A stretch of DNA of 64,000 nucleotides from Macrostomum lignano (GCA_002269645.1 NIVC01000971.1:1-64000), one strand, 5' to 3'. Positions 4,311 through 63,671 are shown, counted from the first letter of the stretch. Made by a program: numbers and translations. Notes: generated by a model from the sequence alone, not told the origin.

Positions 4311-4406
4311 TCAAAATATTTTTTTAGTCAAGATAAACTGTTATTAGAGTTGGTTATTAAACTCATTTTTGAAAAAAACATGCAAAATTTAAAGTTGAGA
4401 ACTCAC

Positions 4407-4532: not shown

Positions 4533-4581
4533 CTGCAAAGTTGGTAAGAAGAAAAACACAGAAATTAACTTCTTTAGCTCC

Positions 4582-5480
4582 ATATTTCCGACATTTCATA
4601 TCTCCGACACTTCACATCTCCGACATTTCATATCTCCGACATTTCATATCTCCGACACTTCACATCTCCGACATTTCATATCTCCGACATTTCATATCTC
4701 CGACACTTCACATCTCCGACATTTCATATCTCCGACATTTCATATCTCTGACATTTCATATCTCCGACACTTCATTTCTCCGACATTTCATATCTCCGAC
4801 ACTTCATTTCTCCGACACTTCATTTCTCCGACACTTCACATCTCCGATACTTCACATCTCCGACACTTCATATCTCCGACACTTCACATCTCCCACACTT
4901 CATATCTCCGACACTTCATTTCTCCCACACTTCATATCTCGACACTTCATTTCTCCGACACTTCATTTCTCCGACACTTCACATCTCCGACACTTCACAT
5001 CTCCGACACTTCACATCTCCGACACTTCACATCTCCGACACTTCACATCTCCGACACTTCATATCTCCGAAACCTCATATTTCCGACACTTCACATCTCC
5101 GACACTTCACATCTCCGACACTTCATATCTCCGAAACCTCATATTTCCGACACTTCATATTTCCGACACAATATCTTCGAGACCTCATGTCTCCGACACT
5201 TCATATCTCCGACATTTCATGTCTCCGACACTTCACACCTCCCACACTTCATATCTCCGACACTTCATATCTCCGACACTTCATATCTCCGACACTTCAT
5301 ATCTCCGACACTTCATATCTCCAACATTTCATATCTCCGACACCTCATATCTCCGGCACTTCATATCTCCGACACTTCATATCTCCGACATTTCACATCT
5401 CCGACACTTTATATCTCTGATATTTCATATTTCATATCTCCGACAAGCGTAACGGAGATGTGAAGTTTCGGAGATATAAA
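4582..5480. repeat. 16-bp minisatellite (ctccgacacttcatat), probably a foldback element arm
   Basis: About 54 tandem copies, with an inverted copy of the motif at 5455-5478. Confidence 0.9.
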
Positions 5481-13325: not shown

Positions 13326-14067
13326 GCTGAGGTCAGAAGGTACTCGTACAATGGTATAAAATAAATCATATATCAGAATCGGACAGAATCGTAAGGATCG
13401 CTTGGGACTTTTTAGTTGTTCTCATAAAAGAGTCTGAGAATGCCATGGTGCCAGTAATCTTGCCATTCGATTATCGTTGGTTTGAAAGTAATGACTCCAT
13501 GGAGTCTGCTTTAAAATTATTCCCCAAAACCACTTTAGCCGTTAGCGTCACAAACTGTGCTTGCTGTGTGTATTTGACTTTTAACCAACAGCGCAAGAGT
13601 CTAAATTGAAACGCCACAGTTTAATGTACAACTGAATTGGTTGTTCTAAGTTACCACCTTTTGAGCTGTGGTAGAAATATGTGTAAGTATGAGAAAAATG
13701 GGTAAGTTGCTCAAGGAGGGAGGGATTGCAGAGAGATGCCAAAGGCTGATGCTGATAGGCTACAAAGCTTGATGTCAGTATGTTTTCTCTGATTTTTTGA
13801 AATCTATAAATGTAAGAACAATAGCTGCGCTGTACAAAGGCATTTACAAATTCTTAAATCTTATTTCTTCATTTGTTGCTGAGCAATAAAAAAGATTTAG
13901 CCCAGGGTCGGCAAACGTTTTATCTCAAAGGCCAGATACAAAATCTAGATCATTAGGAAGGGAATGAGAAGAGAGGAAAGAAGACAGAAGACAGAAGAGG
14001 AGAGTAGAGAGAAGATGAGAGATAAGAGGAAAGGGGAGGACAGAAGAGGACAGAAGAGAGGAGAGGA

Positions 14068-14860
14068 CCGACCGTGATCTGCCAAACCGGTCACAACGGG
14101 AGGCTGCGCGTCACTAGAAGAGCCTTCTCCCGACCGGGGATCCCGCCCGCAGGCTCCTGGAGAGCCAAGTCAGGCCCCGACTCCGCTACAGGGCCCATGA
14201 AGTCACCATCGCCACGCGGCGCTCGGACTTTGGATCGCCTAGGATCAGAAATCTGGCGGTTCATCAAGCAACTGCCAGCCCACATCTGCCTTAACCTCCA
14301 GTGGGTACCTGGCCACGCGGGCATCCAAGGCAACGAGGACGCAGACCAGACCGCCCGCCAGGCGCTCGAAATAGATCAAGGCCCCGCGACTGCCAGAAGC
14401 GAAGCAGCGACATGCGTCGCCACCAGGACCCTCCTGCGGACCTGGCGGAATACCCGCAAAAGGACTCATCCGCTCCGCAGCGACACTCCGGGACACGATG
14501 ACCTGGACCGCTGGGGCCAGGTCATCAGACTCATCATTAGCCAGCTACGCACTCTCTGCACCTCGATCATCAAAGACTCGGCCTACCGCTTTGGCCTAGC
14601 CATGGATGATAGATGCCCAGCGTGCGGGGAACATGATAGCGCAGTTCACCTCCTCATCGACTGCTAGAACTATTAACCGATGCGTAGCCAAATCTGGGGA
14701 GGTGGCTGAATCGGCATCGACTACATCTTCAGAGGAGACGCAAGCCTCATTTGCCGCTACCTTCGCAGTGTGGGCCGCACGGACCCGCCCATTGACGATC
14801 CTGGCGGACCGACGGCCCCTGCCCCCTTGCCCGCGGGCGAGGACAGGCGGGAGTGAAGCG
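14068..14860 (+). mobile_element. 5'-truncated LINE fragment with RNase H and CCHC knuckle
   Basis: Contains LQWVPGHAGIQGNEDADQTARQA (LINE RNase H) and RCPACGEHDSAVHLLIDC; GA-rich tracts on both sides. Confidence 0.85.
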
Positions 14861-32370: not shown

Positions 32371-32625
32371 TGGAGGTTTTTTAGGGCTATGACCCAGAGA
32401 CGCGCTCTCTGACTTCTCCACCCTTCTGGCTACTGTGTGACTGGCGGGTGAAGTATTTTGTTGTTTTACTGCATTCAATTACTACATGTGAACAAAAACA
32501 TCCGATATGTGCATGTAAAGTACTTTAAATTCAATATCCAATTTGACTTACAGTGTGTTGGATAAAGTTACAAGTCAAGAATTCAAGCAGATAAAACAAA
32601 AATGCATTCATAAATCTGCACTTAC

Positions 32626-32986
32626 TTGTCCTTTTCCAGCAGGAAAATTCTGTCCTGCGTGAAGACGAACTCCTCCTCCGTGAAGATGTTCCTGATTTGC
32701 TCCCTGGCAAGATCTACCTGCCCGGTTCTGATGCCCTCGCACACCTCCTTGATGAACTGGTTGAACGTTGGATAGTCGCCGAAGACAAGATCGGCGAGGG
32801 TTCGCATTGTCTCGTCGACCTCCTGATTGACAGAGACCAAGAAGTTGCTGCAGGGCTCCCGGACCAGCTTGAGAAAGTGGTTGCGCACGAGCCGCTCCAC
32901 CACAGGGTACACGTTGTCGAATCCTGGCAGCTCGCAGCCCCTCTGCTCCTCGATGTCCTTCTTGGCCGCCTCCCACATCGCAGTAA
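32626..32986 (-). CDS. Mx: Mx-like GTPase, exon 5 (stalk)
   Basis: Contains RGCELPGF and EEFVFTQD (Mx stalk motifs); phase-1 acceptor, donor AA|GTAAGT. Confidence 0.85.
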
Positions 32987-32987
32987 C

Positions 32988-33845
32988 TGCGTAAACGGGA
33001 ATGGCATTGCAACTGATAGGGAGTCTGAGCTGTAATGTCACTGTGTCAACGGGAATGGCATTGCAACTGATAGGGATTCTGTGCTGTAATGTCACTGTGT
33101 CAACGGGAATGGCATTGCAACTGATAGGGATTCTGTGCTGTAATGTCACTGTGTCAACGGGAATGGCATTGCAACTGATAGGGATTCTGTGCTGTAATGT
33201 CACTGTGTAAACGGGAATAGCATTGTAATTGATAGGGACTCTGTGCTGTAATGTCACTGTGTAAACGGGAATAGCATTGCAACTGATAGGGATTCTGTGT
33301 TGTAATGTCTCTGTGTAAACGGGAATAGCATTGCAACTGATAGGGATTCTGTGTTGTAATGTCACTGTGTAAACGGGAATAGCATTGCAACTGATAGGGA
33401 TTCTGTGTTGTAATGTCACTGTGTAAACGGGAATAGCATTGCAACTGATAGGGATTCTGTGCTGTAATGTCACTGTGTAAACGGGAATGGCATTGCAACT
33501 GATAGGGATTCTGTGTTGTAATGTCACTGTGTGAACGGGAATAGCATTGCAACTGATAGGGATTCTGTGTTGTAATGTCACTGTGTAAACGGGAATGGCA
33601 TTGCAACTGATAGGGATTCTGTGTTGTAATGTCACTGTGTGAACGGGAATAGCATTGCAACTGATAGGGATTCTGTGTTGTAATGTCACTGTGTAAACGG
33701 GAATAGCATTGCAACTGATAGGGATTCTGTGTTGTAATGTCTCTGTGTAAACAGGAATAGCACTGTAATTGATAGGGATTCTGTGCTGTAATTTCACTGT
33801 GTAAACGGGAATAGCATTGCAACTGATAGGGACTCTGTGCTGTAC
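32988..33845. repeat. 54-bp minisatellite, about 16 copies, abutting the Mx exon 5 acceptor
   Basis: Unit translates as LQHRIPISCNAIPVYTVT in the 391-aa ORF 32622-33797. Confidence 0.95.
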
Positions 33846-34154
33846 TGTATGTCAACTGAATTTAGTCTAGCTCTGCTATCACTAATTCTATATTTACTGC
33901 GAAATAGAAGGAGTACATCTCAAGAACCTCTAAAAGTTCCGGTGTTTTGTATTTTAAACAAAGCAGCACGAAATATCTCTTTGCGCTTGCAGATACGGGT
34001 CTTCAAATCATTAGCCATTTAATGCGGCTGTTGCATGTACGTCCTGATTACTAACATAATAACTTAATCATGTTTTGGAATTCTTCATCCGATTTCTCAT
34101 AACTGCATCTCATATGCCGACAAACTCATATCGATAAGAGCGTATCGGTCTTAC

Positions 34155-34392: not shown

Positions 34393-34488
34393 CTTTCAAA
34401 AACAAAATGATTTTTGTTATGGATCAAACCTAACCATTTTTAAAGTACACCGTAGTCATACTGCTAAAATTACCAAAACAGTATATAC

Positions 34489-34972
34489 CTGGATCTCTCT
34501 CATCAGCTCAGGGATGTTGTGTTTGATGGCGTCGTAGAGCTCGCTGCTCAGCTTCACCGCCAGAGTCTTGGTTCCATACTCGAATTTGTCCAGCGCCCTG
34601 AAGTGCCGATGGGTCCGGAAGAACACTTCCTCCTCCCTGGCCGCCTGCTGCAGGCTCATGTTGTCCTTCAGCTGCTGCGGTGTTCGGCACCTCACGGAGA
34701 CGTAGCCCTTCTTCAACGGAATCTTCCGGTTTTGCATGAGCGCCATGACTTCTGATTCAGAGCCCGGGTTGACCAGGTCAGGACAGGTGAGAACTCCGAT
34801 TGTTCGCTTCGATTCCGGGTCGACCTCTTTGGCTAGGGAGAGAGCCTCAACTGTCTCGATGTCTACGTGGCACGGGATGACAACCAGTATGATGACTTCT
34901 GGCTTTTGTATATAACTCATGATGAGAGATTTCGTTATGCCCGCCACGGCATATCCAGAATCGGCGGAGAAT
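34489..34972 (-). CDS. Mx: Mx-like GTPase, exon 3
   Basis: Contains IILVVIPCHVDIETVEALSLAKEVDPESKRTIGVLTCPDLV (G4 region) and KGYVSVRCR; donor CAG|GTATAT. Confidence 0.9.
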
Positions 34973-35063
34973 CTGTTTAGTATTTTGTGCATACAACATT
35001 GCAATTAAAACATGCGAGTGTTCGGCTAGATGTACATGTAGATAAAAATGAAAAGTTACTCAC

Positions 35064-35255
35064 CGAGCAATCCCCGGCAGATCAATAAGCGTCAAGTCGG
35101 GCGACTCGGGGCTCTCAACCCAAAGCTCAATGATGTGCTCAGATATCTCCCCAGGAGAACTTGTCATCTCATTTTGAGCCTCTCTGATTGCCTGTCCAAT
35201 CTCGGGCGATGCGTTGAGGTTCTTTTCTTTATTCTGTCCTGACTTTGTTTGGTAT
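35064..35255 (-). CDS. Mx: Mx-like GTPase, exon 2
   Basis: Reads ...ESPESPDLTLIDLPGIAR (G3 motif); AG/GTGAGT, phase 2-2. Confidence 0.9.
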
Positions 35256-35441
35256 CTGGAGAGAACAAAGACATTTCTTATGCTTCAGTTTTACTGACGG
35301 ATGGATTCATTCTGCTAAAACAAAATGACCCATAACTGTCGTGCTGTTCTGCTGGGTGGTCTGCTCGTTAGTACACATTATTCTACAGAGTACGTACATA
35401 CATGTATTATGCTTCCAATATATCAGAATAAAAAGCTTTAC

Positions 35442-35956
35442 TTAATCCGTGCCGACCATCCAGGCTCGTCCCTGCTCCGCATGCTGAGCATTAGAGGGCA
35501 CCGGGTTACAATGCCTGTTCCGCGTGGAAGCTCAACGCCCGAAATGGCCTCGAGGACGGAAGACTTGCCGACGGACTGGTCGCCCACAACTGCGATCGCT
35601 GGTAGCCGAATATCCCTCTGCAAGCCTTGAGCTCGAAGACAGTCGATGGCATCCAGGCAAGGCTTTAGGCATTCTCGGAACGCCTTTCCCAGCTCAGGAG
35701 AGAACGCGCCGTCTTCAGCGGCTGCCTGGTCAGATGACGGAATTGGTCGCGATTCTTGTCCGCCGTATTCAGCACTGCTGCCAATGCTGCTTCCTCCGTC
35801 GATGCCCGAATCGCCATAAATTGATGCGGAGCTTCTGGAGCCAAAACCTTTTCCATCCCTATCCACTTGCAATTTTTGATGCGACGAAGCCTGGCTTCCA
35901 CTTCGAAAGGCTTGCGACTCTGTTTGCATTATGGGAACAGTGCCGGCCAGAAACAT
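35442..35956 (-). CDS. Mx: Mx-like dynamin GTPase, exon 1 (start codon uncertain)
   Basis: Contains [38 protein letters not shown] (G1/G2 motifs); donor AA|GTAAAG. Confidence 0.9.
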
Positions 35957-37529
35957 GTATCTAAAGAGCGATGCCAGTGCAGCCTTGTTCTGTCTTTAAA
36001 TATACAAGATAGATGTACAAGATTTTGTGGCGAGCACTGTACTGCACTGCACCTGCATGCTGTTTACTGCAATTTTATTCTGTGTTTACAGAGCAGCCAG
36101 AGTTTTTATCTCATCTATAAATCAAGAGCGTAAAAACAAGTACGATGGCAAAGTTGCAAAGTTGCACAAAAATTGCACGTCTTTACAACACGTCGTCGGT
36201 ATATATGTAAGATGCATGCAAAAGCCATATCATTTTATTTTGATCTTTGTCAAGGATGTCAATTAATATTTGTGGCTGAAAATACGTTCCACATAGTCAC
36301 GTCTATTACGATGCATCTTTTAATAGCGTTCGACTACTGTAGGTTGTCGACGCCAGCCTTCCAGCAGAACTTGGAATCAATTACTGACGCAATATTTGTT
36401 GGCATGCATCGTCAGCTACTGTATCACTTAAAGATTTTACCGCGCATTTGCTGCTTCATGAAGCAGAACTGGTGAAAGTCGGCAATGATACCTGAACCCA
36501 ACGCTCTGATCTATAGGATAAATAGGTTTGCATGCAAAATGGGGACTTCGATCGTTCCAGAGGGAGAAGATCACCGACGCATTAGATAGAACACCGCGGG
36601 TGCATTCAAACTATGCTGTGAACATATCGCACACGGTGTGCCCGTCCAATTCCGCGATTTCATAGCCTTCTCGTGTGGGTAAGCGTAATTTTAGAGCCTC
36701 AGTGTACCGTCTCTACTCACTGCAGTTCTCAAATGCAATTTTTTAATAGTTTATTTATTGAACCTAGGCTTAAACATGGCCAAACTTTGATCTGTGGCAT
36801 TCCGACCTTACAAGAAATTACATGTTACATGTAAATGATTCAACTAAATGATTCAAATTACATGTTACATGTAAATGATTCCGTCGACTCGACATAGATT
36901 CGTAGTCTGAACGTCGAATTCAGGTCGAATTTGAAAAATGTTTAAGTTTAGTCAAAAGTGTTTTTAAATGAGGTAGAAACTAAAAAAAACTCATTATTTA
37001 ATTTATTTCTTTTTCTTCAAATAGTCAAAACTGCATCGAAATCTAGTCAGTTTTGTGACGTCGACATCATGTCGAGAATCGAAAGTGTTTCGACGAATGT
37101 TCTAGTCACGGAATTTTGCCGTTAAGTAGGCATATTTAAAATCTGTGAAAGAGGAATAATTGGCAATAATTTTTGTAATATTATTGCATTTTTGGACCCC
37201 TTCTATATTTACTTTCAAAATACTAATATTTTTTGTATATAAATTTTGTTTTTTCACAGACTTTTAAACAAGTTTTTCCTTTGCGCGTGCGAATTATCAC
37301 ATGCAAATAATAATTATAACGCATGAGACTTTGGTTCCGCGTCAAATTCCGTGTTGATGTTTTGCACCTACATTTCAATGCGGAATTTAATGTGGAATTT
37401 TCATAAGCCTGTTCAATGCGGAATTCATTGTGTGGAACTGGGGTACCGGCTGGACCCTCTGCTACATCTATGTATGCGGACCAACGAGGCCGTGGATGAG
37501 TTGGAGCGCTGAACGGACCGAGGCTGCAG

Positions 37530-39925
37530 CAGAGCTGTCGCTGCATCTCCATGTCTGATCGGCTGCTTCAGGTCGACGCCTAGCTTCGTGGCCGAAACGC
37601 TTGTCTGTTCTGCATGGGTGAAGGAGACGGCACACCGTGACAGTGACTAGCCCTTCCTCGGAAGGAAATGACCACTAATCCTCCACTAAATGTGGTTCAG
37701 TAGATCTGAGCGGTCGCTGTTTGTGACACCGCGTGCGAAGGGCAACCACCGGAGCGCTGGATGACTTTTGTAGGGGCAGGAAAGGGTGTCGGCCAACACC
37801 CGCTTTCGCAAGCCAACCGGTTGGCTCGCGACCTTCGTGGGCTGCAAGCGGAGGCGGAGGAATGCGCGCGGCCGGAATGCGACGGAAAAGCAGGCACAGC
37901 TCGATCATGTGCTTGTGCGTCTTTGTGAGCGCCGCCGTGCTGTCAACTGTCGCACCATCACGCCACTGGCTCTCCGGTCTGATCATCGGCTCCTCGTCTG
38001 CGACCTGCATGTACGCGATTTGCTTCACCGTCCGCGAAAGCGGCCAGCACAGCGCTACTACCGTGTGCGCAAGGAGACCCGAGGCTTGTCGCCATTTCAC
38101 TAGCGCCTTCGTCAGCGCGCTTGGCGACAGGTGCGGGCCCGCCGTGTACACGGAGGTGTCGCGGTTAGAGCCGCGGCAGAGCAAGCAGTCCAGCAGATGC
38201 GACCGGCCCAACGTAGGCAGCCGGTCTGGCAGGATGACCCTATGATTTGACAAGCGACGGCAGAGCTGGAGAGGCTCCGTCTGAGCAGGCGGCCAACTAT
38301 CGAGGCCGAGGAGGCTCTGGCGGCTGTCTACCTGCAGCGGCAGCAGTCCGCTGTCGATGACGCCATCCAAGCCGTCTCTGCCGCAGGGCCCGATGCCAGA
38401 GGGCGCGTGGCCTGGTCCGTCATCAACGTTCTGACGGGGCTGAAGCGGCGCATCCCGCTCAACCTGGCTGACGACACTCCGGATAAGCGCAGAAATGAGC
38501 TGCGCGAGTTTTTCACCGCCATCGTCCACGCGCCGTCGCCCCCGCTGCCAAACGATCTGAGGCTGCCGCCGGGGACGCCATTGCTGGCAGAGGAGAGTTT
38601 TGATGTAGCCCCAGTCAGCACAGCCCGACGATGTGATGCTCGCCCTGAGGACTCCGGACGGCAATGCGCTGGGTCCGGACGAGGTGCCCATCGAGGTGCT
38701 GCGACTCTACTGTGTGGCAGCGAGGTCGCCAGTGTTATGAGCCGCGTGCTTTACGGTGAAGTGGCACCCAACGAATGGACCATGGCGTACATCGTCGCTA
38801 TTCCGAAGAAGCTGGGCACCACACGGCTTCAGGAGCACCGAAGTATCTGCCTGCAGTCCTGTGCTGCGAAGCTATTCAACCGGATTCTGCTATCGCGGTT
38901 GCAGCCCATGCTGGATCCATATCTACGTCCTGAGCAGAACGGGTTACGGCCCCATCGCAGCACAGTGACGCAGATCCTTGCTCTTCGCCGAGTCATCGAG
39001 AAGGCGCGGACACGCCAGTTGATCCTGATTGTTATCTTCACAGATTTCAACAAGAAGGCATTCGACTCGGTCGTCAGGTCTGTTCTCCCAAAGTTGCTCA
39101 GTGCGTACAACGTGCCAGAGCTTTTGCTTTTATGGTTCTGTAGCACGACACGAGCCTGTCGGATTTCTTTAAGACATTCTCTGGGGTGCTTCAGGCAGAT
39201 ACGCTTGCGCCGTTCCTGTTCGTCCTGGTGCTTGACTGGGTGCTGCAGACCGCTCTCCCTTCTAACGACGACGGCTTCCTGCTGCAGCCACGCATGGGGG
39301 GGGGGCGACGCCAACTGGAGAGGCGGCTCGGCGTGCTTTGCTACGCCAACGATCTCGCCCTGTTGTCTCGACCCTTGAGGGCGCCCAGCGCCAGCTGAAC
39401 CGGCTGGTGAGCGTGTGGTGAGCGGCGGCCTGGTGGTCAACACGCAGAAAACTGTCGTGCTCTGCGTGCCGGACGACATCGAAGCTGCAATTTTCTGCCG
39501 AGGCGCTGATGGACAGGTGAGGAAGCTTCTGCACTGTCAGCAATTCTACCTCGGCGGTCTGGTGCCTCACGTTCAAGACGATCTGCGGACTTTTTTGGGC
39601 AGCCTTCAGTTCTGTGAGGGCAGTCCTCCAGTCCGAGGCCCTGCCTGACCGCCAGAGGTTGGCGCTGTTCCAGTCGGTGATCGAGACAGTCCTGATGTAC
39701 AACCCTGAGACCAGGACGCTGACGGATTTGCTCAAATAGCAGGTCGATGCGGCGCGCATGCTGGCCTGCTGCGGGCCGCCTTCAAGATCTGCTAAGAGCA
39801 CGTCACCAGCAAACTGTTACGCCGTCGGCGGACTCTAGCTGGCAGGCCATATCATCTGAGCCGAGTCCTAAGCTGCCCGCAACTGGTGTAGGGACGTGCT
39901 GCTGCTGACGTTGTTGTTGTTGTTG
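37530..39925 (+). mobile_element. Degenerate RTE-type LINE (APE C-terminus, RT, 3' domain)
   Basis: Contains QLDHVLV..SDHRLL (endonuclease end), IPKK..KLFNRIL..EQNGLRPHRST..KAFDSV and CYANDL (RT); many frameshifts; (GTT)n tail. Confidence 0.9.
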
Positions 39926-41928
39926 CTAGCTCAAACCTTCGACCTCCATTGCTGCAGCTCCTTCTTCAGTACTCCAGGGACGCCCTCTCGTTGGTCAATA
40001 AATCCGATGCATTGGTCCATGGTCCATAGGTCCTTCTGCTTCTCTTAAGGGCCCAGTGTAGCACGCTGATGGACCTTTGGTTCGGCCTCTTGTTTTTCCA
40101 AGCCGGACTCTTGCCGGGGAGCTTCTCGGTTGCTAGCTGTCGGACTGAATGGCTTATGCCACCCCCGGTTGCTATTCCTTTGGCTGGCTGTTGGGTTGGG
40201 GTTACGGCCCAGCAGCTTCTCACCTATAGTCTCCACTCGCCTTTCAGCAACTCATGGAGTATCCCTATTACTTCCAACACGTTCGTTTGATGCTGCTGAA
40301 ACGCCAACCGAGGTTAGACTCAATCATAGAATTTCAGCACCAGAACTTCCCGGCCGGTGCCTCTCACTCCAACAACCCTGCCGCCACTCCAGGATAATAC
40401 CGGTGTTAGAAAAGTGGCTGGAAGGGCTTCCAGTCAATCCGGCGACAGACGATCCGACGACAGATATTTAAATCAACGTCGTATAACAGAATATATACGG
40501 ATTAGTTGAGCTATCATTTTTAGCTCTTTATTATTACTTATTAATACTTAAATAAATAAATAACAATTACTTAAACAATAATTGTTGCAGTTATATTTTT
40601 ACAGCTGTACGTATTGTCGCAAATACAATATATACATTTAAAACAATATTGATACAGTCATACAAATTTGCTTTCCAAGCAGATTAAATTGATACAATTG
40701 TACCTTCAGAAAGAAATTAAACTGGAAAGAGGATGTGAACTTAAGCGCGATTTGGAAGCCGTGAGTCCAGCAACCAAACCGCTGCGAAATTCTCACTATT
40801 CAGACCCAAAATAGACAAGAAAAGCGTAATTGATCTTTCTTCCACCCCGGCCGCTTCCGCATGGGATAAATGGGGAAAAATGGGGATTTCATGTGAACTT
40901 AAGGCTCTGAAATGGAAGCGGTGGTCGATTGAGCCGGTTTCTCTATCGGATCTCTCTACTGGACCGACAATGAGACACGAATCGTTGAAAACCGCATCTC
41001 TCTATCATTTGGTCTCCCTGAATGGGATAAATGGGGAAAAATGGGGATTTCATGTGAACTTAAGGCTCTGAAATGGAAGCGGTGGTCGATTGAGCCGGTT
41101 TCTCTATCGGATCTCTCTACTGGACCGACAATGAGACACGAATCGTTGAAAACCGCATCTCTCTATCATTTGGTCTCCCTGAATGGGATAAATGGGGAAA
41201 AATGGGGATTTCATGTGAACTTAAGGCTCTGAAATGGAAGCGGTGGCCGATTGAGCCGGTTTCTCTATCGGATCTCTCTACTGGACCGACAATGAGACAA
41301 GAATCGTTGAAAGCCGCATCTCTCTTGCGTTGATGATTTTTACGTTCTATATTTCGAGTACTGATGGGATTCTACATTAGTAGGCAAGATAGGCTGACAG
41401 AGATGCCGAGGGTGCTGTGCGTTTGTAATCATATGCCTAAATCTTATGGACCTAATATTGAAATCCTCATCATATCGAGGCAGCCTCATTATATCCCGCA
41501 CCCATATGTGCACGTAATTCTCGGCTAGCCAATATCATTTTATAATGAGTGTTCTTCACTTTTTATTGCCCTGACACCTTGAACTTTCTTTTTGCTGGGC
41601 AACGAGAATTTAAGTATCGATTACGCAATCTGAATCCCGCACCCATTTGTGCACTGCATGTACATTTGCATTGCCGACGCTGAGTGTGTTAATAATACTG
41701 CGATAACATTATAAAAGTGATGAAGTTTTTGGGCAGAAAGGTATTTTATATGTCAAAAAAGCTTGTCAGTAGCCTTCAAGACAGCATGCTGGACTTTAAA
41801 GTACGTGACCATTAGCCATTTATATTTCGAAATCTATGCGTGCAATAATTTGGTGATGCACATTTTCTGATCGACTCTTGCGGCTCATTGTTTCCTCCAC
41901 TTTTCAATCTATGTAACTTAGCTTTGTC

Positions 41929-43850
41929 ATGGACTGGGCATGCCATCGATGTGGTAAACAGTTCAGCACTGAATTCAACCTCAAGAAACATCAGCAGACA
42001 ACCAGGTGTTCGGTTTTAAAGGAAGCGACTTCCTTTGGCTCCTGCAAGTCATTCGCAGATGTGAGAGATGCGCTGCAGCGTTCTCCAACCAAGGTCAAAA
42101 GTTTTTAAACCCGAATCTTTTTCCTGAACTTTTGGCAAGCGCTTTGAGAAAGTCGTCGGAATGTCTCGAGAGAACTTCAACAGCTTCAGAAGCCTCATCT
42201 CTGGCTCAGTACGCACTGGATTTGTCTAAGTCAAGAGAACAGAGTATTTCTTTACCTGAAAAAACTCCGCTATGGCGTCAGCTTTGAAGCCATAGGAAAC
42301 GATTTCAACATTTCTGCGCGCCACGCTTGTGAAGTCTTTTGGGAGGTGGCCAAGGATCACTAAATCAACGACCCTTTTCAACCAAGGCTACTGTCATGTG
42401 CTCCGATTGAGACGATCCTGGGACGATTTTTTGCAGGTGTTTTTGAACGATACGTTCGGGATAAGCAGCTTGTTTTGTTTATTGGTGACCATACATACTT
42501 TTTCATCGGTAAAGGCGGCCAGCACCGTCTGCAGAAACGCACATACTATGCTCCGAAGAGTAGCAACGTTTTAAAGAAACTGGTCGTAGTGAATGCGACT
42601 GGCATGGTAGTTTACGCAGCACCGCTCAGCGGATCCATATCTTTTGCCCTCAGTGATGGAAATCTGGCGGCCTACCAGATAGAGATGGAGCGAGAGCATC
42701 TCATTCCAGCTGCACTAACAAAACTACTCTGTGCCAATGTGCCTGGGTATCGAGTCGTGGCGATATTTGACCGCGGTTACAGTCACCACGCTGCACTGAT
42801 TCATCGGGCAAGAGTTTCCGCGATCTGATTGAATCAAATAGTCGAGGAAACACGCTGCTATAGTTTCCTCTCGGACCCGGCGATCCAATACTTAATGATC
42901 GGTTTTGCTACGTAAAGAATCCAGTCTCGGCTGAGGATCGTCCCCTTCACGGAAAACTGACTGCTATTGAGTCAAATACCAGTAGGCTGGCTACGCTTTT
43001 CCGCTTTTCTGTTGAGTGCGCGTTCGCCGCAGTCAAGCAGAACACAGGTGTATTAATGAGCGGCATGAGCCATACCAGTGGCAGCAGCCAGCTGAATTCA
43101 GTACATCTAGTCAGCTAGATGTCATTATCGACAACTGTATTGCCAAATACAACCGCTCGCACATTGGATTCCCACTGAATAAAACGCTACCAAAGTCATG
43201 GAATGACAGCTCACTTTTTTAGTTTGGTCAGAATTTTACCAGGCGCATGTTTCTCAGCAATGAATTCGATCCGATTGAAGGTGTGAACTATCTGTGTGAC
43301 GTGACCCGAACTCCTATCGAAGGGTCGAGGCGCTGGTCACCAGTCGATGTGCTAGATCCAGAGTCCACAGGCTTTCCTCGAATTGAGATAGACAACCTTC
43401 AGGAAGTAAGTGTGGGACCATTTCATGTACAGCAGTCTGAAAGCTGTATCCAAAACATCCAGGTGCAACACACGCTTGAGAATTTCGACGGTGATACGAG
43501 CTACGTGGTTAGAGCTTGAAGACCTGGCATCGCAGCTACCTCAATCGATGCGCTGCTGGAAATTCCGGCAATAACAGCAGCCAAGGAACTGGCAAAAGAA
43601 ATTCGGCAACTGGCAACCGTCGTGGATATTTATGTCCGTTGTGTTTTCGAGGCACACATCTCGAACATATCGAGTCCTTCTTCGCCTGAGCGATTTACCG
43701 AATGGAAACCCTTTTGGATTCCACGATGCCGGTCTAAGGAGGCTACATGCCTACTACTCCTCGTCCAAAGTGGGTAGCCGAACAGCTGGCTGTGACTGCC
43801 ATGTAATGACAGTTCTTTTGGTCCTAGGTCATTATGCCTACCACCCAGAT
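41929..43850 (+). pseudogene. Decayed transposase: zinc finger, HTH_Tnp_4-like, DDE_Tnp_4-like, SWIM-like
   Basis: Motifs in order: CHRCGKQF..LKKHQQTTRC; LYLKKLRYGVSFEAIGNDFNIS; FIGDHT..SDGN..IFDRGY; LTAIESNTSRLATLFRFSVE; KVGSRTAGCDCHV. Several frameshifts and stops. Confidence 0.8.
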
Positions 43851-44029
43851 TCCTTTCGCCAACGATATCCTGAGCGCCGCTTCGTTGATACACAGCTTCC
43901 TAAAAGCCTCAACACTAATCTTTACACCTCTCTACCTGCTGAGGAAAATGTTAGAACAGAGCCTCGTCAAGAGCATCGTTCAGGAGCAAAGGATGCCAAA
44001 CAAACATCATCAAGAAGTTCAGAGCCGCA

Positions 44030-44836
44030 GCCTTTCTGTGGACTAAGAAATAGCGGAGCAGACTGCTATGCCAATTCTGCCATTCAGCTTCTTTACTGGA
44101 TGGAGCAGAAGGGCCCATTAATGAGACGGGACATAGCTAGCGACTTGCAAAGATCTCTACAGCTACTTTTTGATCAAATGCTAGCTTTAAAAAATACTTC
44201 TGCCGCAGAAGTACAAGGAATTATCAGGCGCATCTTGCCCGGCAGATTTGCTGCTGGTGAGCAGCACTGCTTTCTGGAATTCTTGGAAGCCCTGCTTTCG
44301 ACTCTCTCTCGGTCGCTAATGGCGCCCTTGCAGATGTTACTGCGCTCCGTAATTGTCGACGTTGTGGCTACAACGCAGCCTCGATTCAAACAGGAACAAT
44401 CAGTGAACAAATTCTTTACGTTCCTCTCTCAGAGTGCAGCAGGGCTCCGATTAGCCTTTAAGATCTTTTGGAAGAGCGACTGCGACCACGCATTTCGCAG
44501 TGCGGCCAATTAGGATGCGAAGGCTTGATTGAAGAGCAGATTATTCTATCAGCGGCCAAGTTTGCAATTATTTACTTCAGCAGGACACCAGAAAACTATA
44601 ACGCCGAAAAAGTCAACACCCAAATACGGTACTCACCAAGATCTGAGAGTAATTCCGACTTCGGCAGCCCTGTGATAGTGATAGGCAGATCTCTCCGTCG
44701 CGGGCACTACACTACCAGTGTTTGGCATGACAATGCATGCTGGTTGATTGACGATTCCAGAATTGTGCCCAACTGCAATCCGTTTCTCCGGGATGCACAA
44801 AATATCGTTGCTGTAGTTGTGCAAAAGAAAGACTGA
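44030..44836 (+). CDS. Compact USP (peptidase C19) deubiquitinase-like domain; one frame change near 44470-44510
   Basis: Cys box GLRNSGADCYANSAIQLL, QHCFLEFL box, His box GHYTTSVWHDNACWLIDDSRI. Confidence 0.8.
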
Positions 44837-46643
44837 TCGTGCTTTCACCAGATCGTAGACCCGAGCTAGACAAGTTTTAGTTTATCCTTGCGATGCACTC
44901 CAAGATTCTAAAGATTTATTCCTACCTATGAACTTTTGCTTGCCACTACTTGCTCTGTTACATGTACTTTTGCTTGTTAATATTTGCTCATGCACTTTTG
45001 GTTCCTATTATTTGCAAATGCACTGTATCATACAGTACTAAAATCGTGCATTTTAATATTTCATTAAACCTGTTCAGAAAAGTCTAATAAAGATACTTAA
45101 AAAGATATTTTAACGTTAAATACAATAACAGAAATTATTAAAACATTCTTCAACATAAAGACTCAAGGCAGCTTTACCGGCCTGCTTCATCGGTCAGATT
45201 CTCATTGTCGGTCCAGTAGAGAGATCCGATCGAGAAACCGGCTCAATCGGCCACCGCTTCCATTTCAGAGCCTTAAGTTCACATGAAATCCCCATTTTTC
45301 CCCATTTATCCCATTCAGGGAGACCAAATGATAGAGAGATGCGGTTTTCAACGATTCGTGTCTCATTGTCGGTCCAGTAGAGAGATCCGATAGAGAAACC
45401 GGCTCAATCGACCACCGCTTCCATTTCAGAGCCTTAAGTTCACATGAAATCCCCATTTTTCCCCATTTATCCCATGCGGAAGCGGCCGGGGTGGAAGAAA
45501 GATCAATTACGCTTTTCTTGTCTATTTTGGGTCTGAATAGTGAGAATTTCGCAGCGGTTTGGTTGCTGGACTCACGGCTTCCAAATCGCGCTTAAGTTCA
45601 CATCCTCTTAGCAAAATCAATCGATCTAGAAAAATTAGCTGGCAATACACAATACACAAGCAAGCTTATTTTTCACAGGGATATAGCTTTGTAGCATGTG
45701 CAGGCAGGCAGTTCGGGCACCATTTTGCACTCCGTGACCCCCACCCAGCCTATCCACTTCCCTCTGCTCGAGCACATCCCAACGCGCACTCAATGAACCG
45801 GAAATCTGTGACCAGACAATAAATATACAGGCACAGCCACATTCTATTTTTCCACCTTTTTGAGTGGCTAACTAACACTCGAAATAACCAGAGAGAATTG
45901 CTCGCTACAAGCTTTTTTTGAAAAATAACATTTTGAAAATCAACAGCTACGTACAGCTGTAAAAATAAAACTGCAACAATTATAGTTTAAGTTATTGTTA
46001 TTTAATTGTTTAAGTATTAATAAGTTATAATAAAGAGCTAACAATAATAGCTCAACTAATCCGTATATATTCTGATTATACGTTGATTTAATATTTGTCG
46101 CCGGATTGACTGTCGCCGGATCGTCTTGTCGCCGGATTGACTGGATACCGCTGGAAATTAGCAGGGTAGCGGATCTCAGATCTCTAAAAGGAAGGCCCGC
46201 AGAATCGCCTCAGCTGCCCGCCTCTGAGGAGGGTTAGAGACTAAATTAGCGATTAGTCTGGCAAGATACACGTGCACTGCACTACAGTCTCAGAGCAGTC
46301 TGCTGTACGTGTGGTCTAAGTTTTGTCTAAAATTTAGTCTTAAGCTCCTTGTGACGTTATTAGCGTGGTGGCCTCGAGAACGAGCGGAGGCAAATAAATA
46401 TAGCAGAGGCGGAATTGTAGCGGTAGCACTTGGCGGTAAATTGGATCGGCGTTATTACTAACGTTGGCTGCAGATTTGGTTTTTTGTTACGTCTTGTACT
46501 TTGATTAACAATACACTGGCGGCTGCGCAACAATAGAATAAATAGCTTAAGTAGTAGAAGTGGCGTGGCTAGAACTATGGAGGAGAGAAGGCAAATGACT
46601 AAACAAAGGCAGTCAGAGCCTACAAGCTACACAGACTCGCAAG

Positions 46644-54302: not shown

Positions 54303-56511
<2,209 letters not shown>

Positions 56512-58419: not shown

Positions 58420-59480
58420 AGTAAATGGATGAGTCACCTTCTGTACCCCTGAGATCTATTTGAGGTTCCCCTTTTGTACCCCTAGGATCTATCTGAGGTT
58501 CCCCTTTGTACCCCTAAGATCTATCTGAGGTTCCCCTTTTGTACCCCTAAGATCTATCTGAGGTTCCCCTTTTGTACCCCTGAGATCTATCTGAGGTTCC
58601 CCTTCTGTAACCCTGAGATCTGTCTGAGGTTCTCTTCTGTACCCCTGAGATCTGTCTGAGGTTCCCTTCTGTACCCCTGAGATCTGTCTGAGTTCCCCTT
58701 CTGTAACCCTGAGATCTGTCTGAGGTTCCCTTCTGTACCCCTGAGATCTGTCTGAGGTTCCCTTCTGTACCCCTGAGATCTGTCTGAGTTCCCCTTCTGT
58801 AACCCTGAGATCTGTCTGAGGTTCCCTTCTGTACCCCTGAGATCTGTCTGAGGTTCCCTTCTGTACCCCTGAGATCTGTCTGAGGTTCCCTTCTGTACCC
58901 CTGAGATCTGTCTGAGGTTCCCTTCTGTACCCCTGAGATCTGTCTGAGGTTCCCTTCTGTACCCCTGAGATCTGTCTAAGGTTCCCCTTCTGTACCCCTG
59001 AGATCTGTCTGAGGTTCCCTTCTGTACCCCTGAGATCTGTCTGAGGTTCCCTTCTGTACCCCTGAGATCTGTCTGAGGTTCCCTTCTGTACCCCTGAGAT
59101 CTGTCTGAGGTTCCCTTCTGTACCCCTGAGATCTGTCTAAGGTTCCCCTTCTGTACCCCTGAGATCTGTCTGAGGTTCCCCTTCTGAACCCTTGAGATCT
59201 GTCTGAGGTTCCCCTTCTGTACCCCTGAGATCTGTCTGAGGTTCCCCTTCTGTACCCCTGAGATCTGTCTGAGGTTCCCCTTCTGTACCCCTGAGATCTG
59301 TCTGAGGTTCCCCTTCTGTACCCCTGAGATCTGTCTGAGGTTCCCTTCTGTACCCCTGAGATCTGTCTGAGGTTCCCCTTCTGTACCCCTGAGATCTGTC
59401 TGAGGTTCCCCTTCTGTACCCTTGAGATCCACCTGAAGTTTCCTTCTGTAACCCTGGGATCTGTCTGAAGTTTTACTGAG
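58420..59480. repeat. 32/33-bp minisatellite upstream of XRN2
   Basis: Tandem gaggttcccttctgtacccctgagatctgtct, about 32 copies. Confidence 0.95.
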
Positions 59481-59616
59481 ATTCCAAGGTTCCATGCAGT
59501 TAGAACAATTTATTTATCTAATATTCATGCTGCCAGAATCGCACTAACAGACAAGAGATCAGTCGCACAGTCAGTAATTAGTTCAGCATTAACTCAGCAG
59601 CTTCAGCCAGCTAATC

Positions 59617-60223
59617 ATGGGAGTACCAGCCTTCTTTCGCTGGCTAAGCCGCAAATTCCCATCAATTGTGGTGCACTGCGTCGAAGAGAAACAGCGCGAA
59701 GTGGACGGCGAGACCGTGCCAGTTGACACCAGCCGGCCTAACCCGAACAACTATGAGTTCGACAATTTGTATTTGGACATGAACGGCATCATCCATCCGT
59801 GCACTCATCCTGAGGATAAGCCGGCGCCGCGTAACGAAGCCGAAATGTTTGCCGCCATCTTCGAATACATGGATAGAATATTTGCTATTGTTAGGCCTAG
59901 GCGTGTTATCTATATGGCTATTGACGGAGTGGCGCCGCGCGCTAAAATGAATCAGCAACGTTCGCGCCGATTCCGCGCGGCCAAGGAGGCCAGGGAGAAA
60001 GCGATTGAGCTAGATCGGCTGCGATCGGAGCTCACAGCCCAGGGTATGACCCTGCCGCCGCCTAAAGCGCCTGAGGAGCATTTTGATAGCAATTGTATCA
60101 CGCCTGGCACTCCGTTTATGGCGCGTCTGGCTGTGGCGCTGCGGTATTACATTCACGACAGGCTGCACAACGATCCGGGCTGGCGCAATCTGCAGGTCTT
60201 CCTTTCTGACGCAAATGTGCCCG
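59617..60223 (+). CDS. XRN2: 5'-3' exoribonuclease 2, exon 1
   Basis: Reads [66 protein letters not shown]; donor G|GTACAG. Confidence 0.97.
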
Positions 60224-60409
60224 GTACAGATGGCTCTTTGCGAGTTGATTTTTTCTCTTAGAAATACCTAAGGTAGCAGCGTAATATAACTATGTCCTAA
60301 TCTGCTACTTTGTTAGTAGAGCAGTAGGATAAAAACCATTAGATAGTCCTGTGTGAGCGGGTGTATAGTATTGTAGGCAGGCATCACAGATACTTTAATA
60401 TTAATGTAT

Positions 60410-60745
60410 TTATTTATTGAAGCGCACTTTAAGCGACATTGTCACACAACCGGCGAGAGGCATTACTGCCCATTCCGCCGACTCCCCTGAGCAGGCACTC
60501 AAGCGCGCGGATGCGTACGCAGTCATACGCACAGGCACACACACAGGACTGGAGTGTACAGCAGCCCTAACTTTATTTACCGTTAGGCATGTACACTTCA
60601 CTGTGCCTTGGGGCTGGCTTGTAGCAGAGCCAAGCCGAGATTCCAATTTATCCCCAAATTAGTATGACTGCGGCACTGGGGATCGAGCCTGGGCCGCTGG
60701 CACATCAGTGCGCCGCGCTTGACCACTGGGCTACGGCCGCCCCCC
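60410..60745 (-). mobile_element. tRNA-derived SINE (family A), copy 3, in XRN2 intron 1
   Basis: Homologous to 15946-16306, with an A-box/B-box-like head on the minus strand. Confidence 0.85.
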
Positions 60746-60802
60746 GTCCCCTCTAATAAAAATTTAGCTATATTGTAGTCTCACACAATGCTCTCCGCAC
60801 AG

Positions 60803-61308
60803 GCGAAGGCGAGCACAAGATCATGGACTTTATTCGGCGCCAGCGCGCCCAGCCGGCGCACGATCCGAACACGCGCCACTGCCTTTGTGGCGCCGATGCC
60901 GACCTGATCATGCTGGGCCTGGCCACTCACGAGCCGCACTTCACCATCATTCGCGAGGAGTTTGTGCCCAACAAGCCGAGACCGTGCGACCTGTGCGGCC
61001 AGCTGGGCCACGAGGCCAAGGACTGCCAGGGCCTGGCCAGGGACCAAGCAGCTGCCGAGGCGCCGCCAGTTATGGCCTCTGAGGCCGATTTCATCTTCAT
61101 TCGTCTGCACGTATTGCGCGAGTATCTGCAGCGCGAATTAAAAATGGACGGCCTACCGTTTGCTTACGATTTTGAACGGGCGCTTGACGATTGGGTATTT
61201 ATGTGCTTCTTTGTTGGCAACGACTTCCTGCCGCATCTGCCTAGTTTAGAGATTCGCGAGGGTGCCATTGATCGGCTGGTTGGAATCTACAAGAGAGCTG
61301 TCTATCAG
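60803..61308 (+). CDS. XRN2: XRN2 exon 2
   Basis: Contains GEGEHKIMDFIR, CGADADLIMLGLATHE, the zinc knuckle CDLCGQLGHEAKDC and FFVGNDFLPHLPSLEIREGAID. Confidence 0.96.
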
Positions 61309-61596
61309 GTGAGGCTCACTGTACTGTGCTGGTCTCCACAGTATGAAAATTTTATTCATTCATCTGTACCAAGGATCGGCGAACTCCTGCCCTCGGGATC
61401 CTTTGCCCGCCAATACTGTACGCCCTGACCAAGAGTCTTGGCAAATTTACTGCTGCGCCAGACTTCGCCCGAACCCTACTTCCATAATTTTAGCTACGTA
61501 AAACTACTAGCATAATAGTAGTATCTGATAAAATTGCAACTAATATTTTAGTATAAAACTTAATCATGTATATGATAAAAATTTGCTTTAACACAG

Positions 61597-61959
61597 ACAG
61601 GCGGCTGGGTCACGGACTCCGGCCACGTGCACCTGGACCGGGTGCAGCTCATTATGCGCGAGCTCGGCCAGATGGAGGACGAAATATTCAAACGCCGGCG
61701 CAGCTCCGAGATGAATTTTCGTCGACGTCGCAAAGCCGACAAGCAGGCCAAACTGCGGCACACAATGATGGAGAGGGGCATGGCTGCTCCGCTTGGCAGT
61801 GGCCGGTCTAGCGGCGCTGCAGACCAACAGCTGTCGTCTGGACAGGCCATACGGGCCCTGATGCGGGAGAGCCAGATGGAGTCGCTTCAGGCTGAGCGGG
61901 ACCGGCAGCAGCAGCAGCAGCAGCCGGACTCTGATGAGGAGGCCGATGCTAGAGATGAG
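61597..61959 (+). CDS. XRN2: XRN2 exon 3
   Basis: Reads TGGWVTDSGHVHLDRVQLIM..EDEIFKRR..DARDE; donor GTATGA. Confidence 0.9.
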
Positions 61960-61995
61960 GTATGATTGAATTTGGGGTTTATATGCTTTGGATAC

Positions 61996-62102
61996 TGTCA
62001 TTTGACTGTCAATGCCATTAGATTGTCAGTGTCATTTGATTGTCATGTGTCATTTGATTGTCAGTGTCATTTGATTGTCAGTGTCATTTGATTGACAGTG
62101 TC
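61996..62102. repeat. 17-bp tandem repeat in XRN2 intron 3
   Basis: tgtcatttgattgtcag, about 6 copies. Confidence 0.85.
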
Positions 62103-62345
62103 TATAAAAAGGCCTCCTTGTGTTCAAAAGAACAACCATGTACACTATAAGATGGCCAATAAATTTCATCACGTAACTGGCTTTTACACCCTTATTATCC
62201 ATCATCACTCCTCATGTTTGCACTGGCGTTAAATACGAGTAAGTGAATGTTCTGTTTGCAGTGACAGTATGTTATCATATACCTAGATTAGGCTTACCAA
62301 CTAAGACCATAGGCTTTTATTAATGCCCAAACATCACCAACGCAG

Positions 62346-63671
62346 GTCCGCCTGTGGGAGGACGGCTGGCGGCACCGCTATTATAGCAGCAAATTCGGGG
62401 TGGCACCGCAGGATAGTCGCGATTTCCCGCTGCTAGTTGCCAGCCACTACGTCAGGGGCCTGTGCTGGGTGCTGCGCTACTATTACCAGGGCTGCGCCTC
62501 CTGGACCTGGTACTTCCCCTATCACTATTCCCCATTCGCTTCCGACTTCACCAACGTGGCTAGCGTCGATGTGGACTTTGACAAGACTCCAACTGAGCCC
62601 TTCAAGCCGCTGGAGCAGCTCATGGCTGTGTTCCCCGCTGCTAGCGGCTCCCACGTGCCGCCATCTTGGCGCGGACTAATGAGCGATCCCGACTCGCCTA
62701 TTATCGACTTTTATCCCATCGACTTCCGCGTCGATCTCAACGGTAAAAAATTTGCCTGGATGGGCGTCGCTCTGTTGCCATTTGTTGACGAGGCGCGCCT
62801 GTTGAAAACGCTGGAGTCAGTTTATCCCAGCCTCCTGCCAGACGAGGTCGAGCGCAACGTGCGCGGACCCGATCGACTGTTTGTTCGATCGACGCACCCA
62901 GCCGCCGCTCTCATCCAGCGCTTGTATGCTGCCGGCAAGAAGGCTCAGGTGGAAGACATTGAGACCAATGCCGATGCCAGCCTCACCAGCGGCGTTGGCG
63001 GCATCTACAAGCCGGATAAGCTGGCCTATCAGCCTGGCGATGATGTGCCTTCGCCAATTGCTCTGCCACAGTTCAAAACTCTGGCGCAATGCCAGGTGGC
63101 CTCCTGTCGCTATTCGGATCCCGTGTTCCCGCGCGGCCACGTGTTCCCAGCCCGTCCGCTGCCGGGCGCCCGGCCACCGCCGGCCACTCTTCGGCCGGAG
63201 GACCTGGAGCCCGGCCGGCAGTGGACGCCGAATCTTGGCCCGGGCCCCAACGGCGGTCACCGGCCGCGACAGTCGTTCGACTCTGCCGGGCCGATGCGCC
63301 GGATGGCATCGGCTGAGCTGGGCTCCGCTGAGCGATTCAACACCAGCCGGTATGGCGCTGTGCCTCCGCCTCAGCTGATGCAGCAGCAGCACAGAATGCA
63401 GCCTTCGGGTCGGTCTGTGCCGAATTTGCATCACCAGCACAATCAGTGGCCTGGCCAGTCGCCTTACCCGTCTCAGCAGCAGCAGCAGCACTATCAGCGG
63501 CAATTCCAGCAGCCACGGCATCAATTCTATCAGCAGCAGCAGCAGCAGTACCAGGGCCCGTATCCGCCGCAATACCAAACTGACTGGAGAAGTGGCAGAG
63601 GCGGCGGCAGAGGTGGTGGCTACAGCGGCGGCGGGGGCGGTCGGGAGTCGCGCCGCTACCAGCCTTACTAA
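62346..63671 (+). CDS. XRN2: XRN2 exon 4 (last)
   Basis: Reads VRLWEDGWRHRYY..YVRGLCWVLRYYYQGCASWTWYFPYHYSPFASD..DLNGKKFAWMGVALLPFVDE; TAA stop. Confidence 0.96.
   Translation, partial: VRLWEDGWRHRYYSSKFGVAPQDSRDFPLLVASHYVRGLCWVLRYYYQGCASWTWYFPYHYSPFASDFTNVASVDVDFDKTPTEPFKPLEQLMAVFPAASGSHVPPSWRGLMSDPDSPIIDFYPIDFRVDLNGKKFAWMGVALLPFVDEARLLKTLESVYPSLLPDEVERNVRGPDRLFVRSTHPAAALIQRLYAAGKKAQVEDIETNADASLTSGVGGIYKPDKLAYQPGDDVPSPIALPQFKTLAQCQVASCRYSDPVFPRGHVFPARPLPGARPPPATLRPEDLEPGRQWTPNLGPGPNGGHRPRQSFDSAGPMRRMASAELGSAERFNTSRYGAVPPPQLMQQQHRMQPSGRSVPNLHHQHNQWPGQSPYPSQQQQQHYQRQFQQPRHQFYQQQQQQYQGPYPPQYQTDWRSGRGGGRGGGYSGGGGGRESRRYQPY

Follow-up and report, generated by a model that had tools for sequence, protein, structure and literature searches.

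Spy transposons are defined by insertion at AAA|TTT without duplication of the target, and they form a sister clade to ISL2EU in published trees (PMC4122938). ISL2EU elements duplicate AT within A|AT|T and encode a THAP finger together with a second open reading frame (ORF) for a YqaJ exonuclease (PMC4482050). Spy-type transposases leave the target unduplicated and are for this reason under development for gene transfer (PMC11304231). Transposons are known that carry proteases of the ubiquitin and SUMO pathways (Ulp1, OTU or VTD). Chromatin marks or repair factors have been suggested as targets of OTU and Ulp1 by Bao et al. (PMC2836005), while the VTD domains are active on ubiquitin chains and have been proposed to shield transposition proteins from the proteasome (PMC9741609). 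Here we describe a transposon, found in the flatworm Macrostomum lignano, that joins its transposase to a ubiquitin-specific protease (USP, peptidase family C19), the third large class of deubiquitinases. It lies in a stretch of 64000 nucleotides (GCA_002269645.1 NIVC01000971.1:1-64000), referred to as the window throughout. According to our analysis, it is very probably the decayed copy of an autonomous cut-and-paste transposon of the PHIS (PIF/Harbinger-ISL2EU-Spy) superfamily, with the USP as a conserved part of the transposase.

Structure, integration site and copies of the element

The element is bounded by terminal inverted repeats (TIRs), occupies positions 40729-45607 of the window and reads GAGGATGTG...CACATCCTC. 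The inverted repeat arms are found at 40727-41150 and 45186-45609 (424 nt, 98%), and the left arm includes a 161-bp subrepeat in 2.9 copies (40861-41325). Every unit of the subrepeat has a copy of the terminal motif, given as ATGTGAACTTAAG for the left arm and as ATGTSAACTTAAG for the inverted repeats of the element at large. One co-oriented, broken frame on the plus strand gives a C2H2 finger, a helix-turn-helix (HTH) domain of the HTH_Tnp_4 type, a DDE core, the remnant of a Cys/His finger and a USP domain. The initial annotation, made from the sequence alone, had proposed a transposon between long TIRs at this place, and all the features it described were found where it had put them. The order of zinc finger, HTH, DDE core, second finger and USP in a single broken frame was likewise borne out by Pfam matches and motifs.

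The element is inserted in an older host repeat, other copies of which provide paralogous empty sites. Seven of these read ...CTAGAAATTAGC... and share the core AGAAATTAGC, as against ...CTGGAAA|TTAGC... with the core GGAAA|TTAGC for the joined flanks of the window copy. Because the target is neither duplicated nor shortened at the empty sites, the insertion is placed between AAA and TTA. The older repeat is about 840 bp long (flanks 40425-40728 and 45608-46145), with inverted ends of 127 nt, GC-rich subterminal motifs in which TCAATCCGGCGACA is repeated, and at least 40 related copies in the genome.

A pattern search of the M. lignano assembly (764 Mb, 5269 contigs, the window being on contig C971) recovered 293 termini matching GRGGATGTSAACTTAAGMRY and none matching the reversed control pattern, a number well outside what chance would produce. 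AAA stands directly before 253 of the 293 termini. Flanks of AAA/TTT were seen at 26 of 30 inspected termini, and a direct repeat at none of the 30. The element integrates at host AAA|TTT or AAA|TTA without target-site duplication, a rule that covers the M. lignano genome and one end of the relative L031. On the metagenome contigs of relatives, inverted repeats were not found, probably because these assemblies end inside the repeats. We regard the element as Spy-like within the PHIS superfamily, since the lack of a target-site duplication at AAA|TTW is the hallmark of Spy; the comparison with Spy was made by published descriptions. Features of PIF/Harbinger proper were not found, that is, neither a 3-bp TTA/TAA duplication at the empty sites and flanks nor a second Myb/SANT ORF among the ORFs of L032 and L033, two loci of sister families.

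At the DNA level, the genome contains no fewer than 52 stretches related to the element (91-96% identity), two of them full-length and many of them 5'-truncated copies that retain the USP part. A six-frame protein search with the second finger and the USP as query found 105 places, with an open frame of 995 codons in at least 12 of them and of 1022 codons in one. Intact copies, for which the initial annotation had suggested a search, were found in two sister families with single ORFs: family B (P0002, 978 aa) and family C (P0003, 988 aa). Both have the same architecture as the window's family (family A), with no break anywhere between the C2H2 finger and the last residues of the USP, and USP domain identity among the three families is 29-39%. 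Of the open copies, at least 12 belong to family B; a comparison of six of these ORFs shows differences at 6 of 2988 nt, and three of the six are identical. Family-B copies are about 99.9% identical and have different flanking sequences, and because their flanks differ they represent recent independent insertions. Family B looks currently active.

Families A, B and C have the 161-bp subrepeat period in common (window 40861-41325, L032, L033), and termini across the families read GAGGATGTG, GGGGATGTC and GGGGATGTG. L032 and L033 each hold only one ORF of at least 150 aa between the repeats, outside the repeat arrays.

Several further observations concern the variation among copies. The sequences of the subrepeat units differ between families, except for the copy of the terminal motif, and the number of units varies within one family. 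Element length ranges from 3.5 to 8.8 kb across copies. There are also short non-autonomous derivatives resembling miniature inverted-repeat transposable elements, with termini 250-500 bp apart (e.g., C486:108770-109097, C665:334249-334502 and C471:134889-135381). In one family-A derivative (L034; G000:C3474:49000-56500, ORF 3299-4720), the DDE core was lost by an in-frame deletion, and an open frame of 473 codons with HTH, finger and USP is kept, possibly encoding a USP product without transposase. In the right arm of this derivative, the 161-bp unit is far more numerous than in the window copy.

The protease domain, the transposase part and their relatives

Pfam UCH, with a curated cut-off of 23.9 bits, matched the window ORF alone at 32.8 bits (E=7e-8), the read-through protein at 54.5 bits (E=1.7e-14) and the relatives at 37.5-55 bits. 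A failure to match C19, which the initial annotation had named as fatal to its proposal, is thereby excluded. The Cys box with the oxyanion Asn, the x-x-EF box, the His box G-H-Y/F/W and the next Asp/Asn are kept in all 8 aligned lineages (19-39% identity). In P0002, the catalytic residues are C723, H938 and D952/D953. The Cys pairs of the zinc ribbon are present in most of the 8 lineages, the first pair being lost in P0024 and P0035. Judged from the alignment, in which all catalytic residues are kept, the USP is apparently catalytically competent.

A profile of the transposon USP domains has USP21 and USP2 as its best matches (E=4.5e-17); USP15, 18, 12/46, 4 and 36 come next. The AlphaFold model of the domain has a predicted local distance difference test score (pLDDT) of 85.7 and a predicted template modelling score of 0.86. 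The best 50 Foldseek matches in the PDB are USP catalytic domains throughout (template modelling score, TM, 0.63-0.74, E down to 4e-16), the topmost of them lying at TM 0.68-0.74, with a TM of about 0.7 to USP2. According to this model, the domain adopts the USP fold of fingers, palm and thumb.

When families B and C are compared (NG86), the proportion of nonsynonymous differences (pN) is lowest in the finger region (0.20) and the DDE core (0.21), higher in the USP (0.38) and highest in the linker (0.58). The protein sequence of the USP is under a constraint above that of the linker and below that of the DDE core. These are proportions instead of dN/dS (the ratio of nonsynonymous to synonymous rates), because synonymous sites between B and C are saturated at about 0.82; copies inside family B are too alike to inform on dN/dS.

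Pfam matches for the UCH, SWIM and DDE_Tnp_4 models had been expected in the initial annotation. UCH was found as given above, whereas DDE_Tnp_4 scored 14.1 bits (E=0.037) on the read-through protein, under its cut-off of 24.8, and SWIM gave no match at E up to 5 in the finger regions of three proteins. The relative P0008 matched DDE_Tnp_4 at 32.4 bits, and more distant matches reached 49-73 bits. In a 30-sequence alignment E372 and R368 are invariant and D291 is nearly so, while D197 is aligned in most of the rows and lies outside the nearly invariant columns. The triad is spaced D(93)D(80-81)E in this element, and relatives show D(92-94)D(74-102)E. Residues 1-700 of the transposase were modelled as one compact fold (pLDDT 86.2), of which the last residues, 677-700, are disordered and run on towards the USP. 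No solved structure matched the transposase part significantly, Tn5 being the top match (E=0.018).

The second finger reads C-x4-C-x2-G-x-R-x2-G-C-C-x-H in relatives and S-S-S-K...G-C-D-C/S-H in the M. lignano lineage, where the first two Cys have become Ser and two of four ligands are lost. The description of this part as a SWIM-like finger did not hold, for the lack of both a model match and these ligands; its predicted layout of strands followed by a helix bears a loose resemblance to SWIM at most.

Outside M. lignano, an exhaustive HMMER search with P0002 through 1.84 billion representative proteins gave 131 matches. A word-indexed protein search returned P0001 alone for the read-through protein and no match for the intact P0002. 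The same fusion, for which a search in other genomes had been advised, was found in ocean metagenomes and sequencing-run assemblies (ENA, Logan, Tara Oceans), where USP-fused relatives show 25-31% identity. A transposase is joined to Pfam UCH in P0012 (1048 aa, 20 cluster members), P0035 (1119 aa, 19 contigs from Tara Oceans and other samples), P0024 (955 aa), P0048 (1639 aa) and P0085 (cluster members up to 1380 aa). In P0071 (cluster members up to 1010 aa), the C-terminus of a transposase is joined to a USP according to profiles built in this analysis, not Pfam. P0001/L031 and P0009 are two halves of a family that is 61% identical to that of the window.

In a tree of the transposase part, the USP-bearing rows are confined to one clade of 23 rows, within which they are scattered, and a larger clade of ordinary DDE_Tnp_4 proteins contains none. 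Most other fused USPs outscore cellular USPs on a profile of the M. lignano type.

Two side observations were made among these proteins. P0129, from a JGI metagenome (930 aa), belongs to the larger clade and is an ordinary PIF-like DDE_Tnp_4 transposase with a C-terminal Ulp1/C48 domain, a parallel case in this superfamily of fusion to a protease for ubiquitin-like modifiers. In the marine relatives L046 (1568-2932) and L049 (202-1944), the part with the C2H2 finger was called as a separate ORF just upstream of the transposase-USP ORF, perhaps because the gene is split or has an intron in those lineages.

State and surroundings of the window copy

The window copy was scored for decay against a read-through reference assembled from other copies. 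It has at least six frame changes (a pair near 42100-42190, then 42783, 43040, a 7-bp insertion near 43500, and 44305) and five in-frame stops (42361, 42861, 43220, 43572 and 44459), and is therefore dead. Small deletions are present as well, one of which removes three residues within the His box. This copy itself is inactive. The finger remnant and the USP Cys box do share one ORF, as had been noted, although its length is 312 codons from stop to stop (43575-44513) and not 293 aa; the His box follows after one further frame change. The conserved region behind the DDE core is also found in relatives that lack the USP. An alternative open frame at 43520-43777 looks protein-like and was rejected, as the homologue P0001/L031 conserves the other frame. 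The features are listed in Table 1.

Table 1. Positions of the element, its coding remnants and its flanks in the window.
Feature	Position	Strand	Remarks
Older host repeat enclosing the element	40425-46145		inverted ends 40487-40613 / 45948-46074, 94%
Host AAA, immediately 5' of the element	40726-40728		empty-site alignment
Left TIR	40729-41325	+	GAGGATGTGAACTTAAG terminal motif, unique stretch, then 161-bp subrepeats
Start codon MDWACHRCGKQF, C2H2 finger and conserved FLNPNLFPELLA segment	41929-42137	+	FLNPNLFPELLA out of frame here
C2H2 finger	41941-42009	+	Pfam zf-C2H2, E=1.4e-5
HTH_Tnp_4 helix-turn-helix	42223-42339	+	34 bits, cut-off 27 (piece 42148-42363)
DDE catalytic core	42475-43040	+	frame changes 42783, 43040; stop 42861
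First D, LFIGDHTY	42475-42498	+	
Second D, AIFDRGYS	42760-42783	+	
E, FSVECAF	43005-43040	+	
Conserved transposase region after DDE core	43041-43751	+	stop 43220, 7-bp insertion near 43500, stop 43572
Degenerate Cys/His finger YYSSSKVGSRTAGCDCHV...	43752-43835	+	
Linker	43836-44036	+	poorly conserved, predicted disordered
USP (peptidase C19) domain	44037-44833	+	frame change near 44305, stop 44459
USP Cys box GLRNSGADCYANSAIQ	44040-44087	+	
QHCFLEF box	44256-44288	+	
Zinc-ribbon pairs CxxC and Cx4C	44351-44371, 44495-44524	+	
USP His box	44684-44725	+	CHY deleted in the window copy
WLIDD	44741-44767	+	
Right TIR	45186-45607	-	98% complementary to left arm; end ...CACATCCTC
Host TTA, immediately 3' of the element	45608-45610		empty-site alignment

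Elsewhere in the window, an XRN2 gene (59593-63671) is 99% identical to an M. lignano protein. Exons of an Mx-like dynamin GTPase were found on the minus strand at 34456-35995 and 32622-33851, and the frame of the downstream exon continues into a minisatellite with a 54-bp period, in which QHRIPISCNAIPVYTVTL recurs about 20 times. Fragments of non-LTR (long terminal repeat) retrotransposons with reverse transcriptase and RNase H are present at 38251-39816, 54614-56511 (minus strand) and 14026-14667, and the fragment at 38-40 kb forms an island of 60% G+C adjoining the nested repeat. Long minisatellites at 4373-5463 and 58489-59513 (HISDTSYLRHFISPTL... and GTEGNLRQISGVQK...) look coding, with several of their frames open.

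Interpretation and comparison with known systems

The repeated ATGTSAACTTAAG motifs of the 161-bp arrays are probably multiple binding sites for the transposase; we posit that it would recognise them through its C2H2 and HTH domains, and that the DDE core would cut and join. The tethered USP might then strip ubiquitin in cis at the transposition complex. The simplest target would be the transposase or its complex, with protection from proteasomal turnover and a longer life of the transposase as the result; alternatively, the USP might act on chromatin marks, or on repair factors, where the donor and target DNA is broken. As read from sequence, a USP that removes ubiquitin and so protects or activates the transposition complex is a tentative proposal, and alternative substrates and ubiquitin-like modifiers other than ubiquitin share the remaining probability. 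We hold with greater reserve the wider proposition of a widespread, mainly marine clade of scarless DDE transposons, with one family still mobile in M. lignano. In this clade, the USP might be an integral, active module of the transposase that is needed for efficient transposition, taking ubiquitin off the transposase or acting on chromatin or repair factors at blunt breaks.

Several points weigh against these readings. P0005-P0008 and P0014 are apparently complete ORFs that end a few residues past the finger without a USP, and the enzyme family as such can therefore do without the USP. The presence of the USP requires six changes on the transposase tree, where many of the USP-less rows are fragments, and the USP of P0012 scores 13.8 bits on the M. 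lignano-type profile, versus 39.9 bits for cellular USPs. With the USP rows scattered and the P0012 score low, the fusions may stem from repeated capture and not from a single ancient event. The M. lignano families have HC-x-x-EF where P0024 and P0035 have DA-x-EF, a change that could alter tail recognition. With regard to the Spy assignment, the published terminal 5'-GGANNNNG-3' motif of Spy is not matched by the M. lignano element termini, and the published spacing of D(79-80)D(44-62)E differs from the D(93)D(80-81)E seen here; the published triad of Spy may use other residues.

Among the alternatives, it is unlikely, though worth weighing first, that the USP-fold domain acts on another ubiquitin-like modifier (SUMO, NEDD8 or an ISG15-like protein) or cleaves the transposase polyprotein itself. 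USP-fold enzymes of other specificity exist, and structures of USP18-ISG15 rank near the top in the structural comparison. The usual Asp of DA-x-EF is Cys in the M. lignano families, and SUMO proteases of the Ulp1 type occur on other transposases, as in P0129 and in Ginger1 and Mutator elements (PMC2836005). Yet the best matches in sequence and structure are the ubiquitin-specific USP2, 21, 15, 12/46 and 4, and the linker has no ubiquitin-like domain or conserved Gly-Gly site.

That the element is an ISL2EU member which happens to carry a USP appears improbable. It shares with ISL2EU the superfamily of HTH and DDE transposases, and the motifs of the HTH_Tnp_4 and DDE_Tnp_4 types are common to ISL2EU, PIF/Harbinger and Spy, of which ISL2EU and Spy are the published sister clades (PMC4122938). 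The elements of M. lignano nevertheless insert without duplication at AAA|TTW instead of duplicating AT in A|AT|T, have a C2H2 and not a THAP finger, and show no second ORF of at least 150 aa, hence no YqaJ gene. The initial annotation, which had assigned the motifs to PIF/Harbinger-ISL2EU transposases, was thus right about the superfamily and went too far in including ISL2EU.

We likewise give little credence to a catalytically inert USP domain kept as a ubiquitin-binding or structural module. Inactive USP-like domains are generally known in cellular proteins, but here all the lineages compared, at 19-39% identity, have retained the full set of catalytic Cys, G-H-Y/F/W His, Asp/Asn and oxyanion Asn.

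The least credible explanations are a one-off capture and a domesticated gene. DNA transposons do transduplicate host fragments and the USP of the window copy is broken, so that a functionless passenger derived from a host USP gene might be considered; against it, the USP continues the reading frame of the transposase in three families at 29-39% domain identity, is intact in at least 13 open copies whose flanks differ, recurs in distant relatives with its catalytic residues always conserved, and has a pN well under that of the linker. The fusion is not a one-off capture, because the USP is found again in further copies, in both of the intact sister families and in distant relatives, and the local capture that had been named as a possible refutation is excluded. 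A family of immobile host genes domesticated from a transposase fused to USP, for which PIF/Harbinger-derived genes such as ALP1 (PMC4671723) offer a precedent, is contradicted by the long inverted repeats, the 293 termini including short non-autonomous derivatives, the near-identical copies at different sites, the paralogous empty site and the many decayed copies.

The preferred reading of a PHIS transposon with the USP as a conserved transposase part matters for several reasons. The USP is built into the transposase and kept across very distant lineages, and the Spy-type signature of insertion without duplication would extend to flatworms. M. lignano is reportedly a genetically tractable laboratory model (Wudarski et al. 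2017). In a tractable host, the wild-type transposase, a mutant of the catalytic Cys and a USP-deleted version could be compared directly. A natural Spy-type variant with a self-protecting domain may also be of practical interest.

Spy (PMC4122938; cgSpy, PMC11304231) is the closest described system. It has in common with the M. lignano element the AAA|TTT insertion without duplication, a single long ORF with an N-terminal HTH, a very variable TIR length, a G-R-G start right after the host AAA, and invertebrate hosts. The published Spy transposases differ in being about 580-700 aa long with no protease domain reported, whereas the M. lignano element carries the USP. Long Spy TIRs are described as being without subrepeats, while those of M. 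lignano are arrays of 161-bp units, and flatworms are absent among the Spy hosts reported in PMC4122938 and PMC11304231. Primers for cvSpy and cgSpy read AAA|GAGCC and AAA|GGGCC, and peptide ends derived from the Spy primers had no match among the relatives found. One Spy of Hydra is tabulated with an ORF of 963 aa and no comment on domains; it might hide the same fusion, and published long Spy ORFs merit re-inspection for a USP.

The initial annotation had known of no C19/USP fusion in DNA transposons. For Spy, ISL2EU and Harbinger elements this agrees with the literature searched, in which no description of a USP was found, Repbase/Dfam not being covered. One other DDE transposase with C19 is on record, however. 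A sentence of Bao, Kapitonov and Jurka 2010 (PMC2836005), citing Gladyshev and Arkhipova 2009, mentions the Trichomonas vaginalis protein XP_001314237.1 with pfam01609 (IS4/IS5-type) and Peptidase C19, and no earlier record of such a combination beyond it was found in the literature searched. Insofar as this mention describes it, the T. vaginalis protein resembles ours in joining C19 to a DDE transposase of a related, IS5-like type. It differs in being a protist protein known from that mention, without element structure, copies, target site or conservation.

Ginger1, with C-terminal OTU or Ulp1, and the Mutator-like KI-MULEs, with Ulp1, also combine a ubiquitin or SUMO cysteine protease, usually C-terminal, with a DDE transposase, and share the idea that a modifier pathway is engaged during transposition. 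Their proteases are C85 OTU and C48 Ulp1, not C19, and their transposases belong to other superfamilies. Helitron/Helentron elements with OTU and VTD (PMC9741609) are similar in that they encode deubiquitinases, and different in their rolling-circle mode, RepHel proteins and the other folds and active-site layouts of their proteases. Finally, the minimal cellular USPs (USP2, USP21 and USP12/46) have the same fold, triad, zinc-ribbon fingers and compact size of about 270-280 residues. They are distinguished by an identity of 14-18%, with no clear cellular parent, and by the position of the domain on a transposase here. Compared with all of these systems, the M. lignano element represents a new combination of Spy-like integration, a USP-fused transposase, TIRs built from subrepeats, a flatworm host and signs of recent activity.

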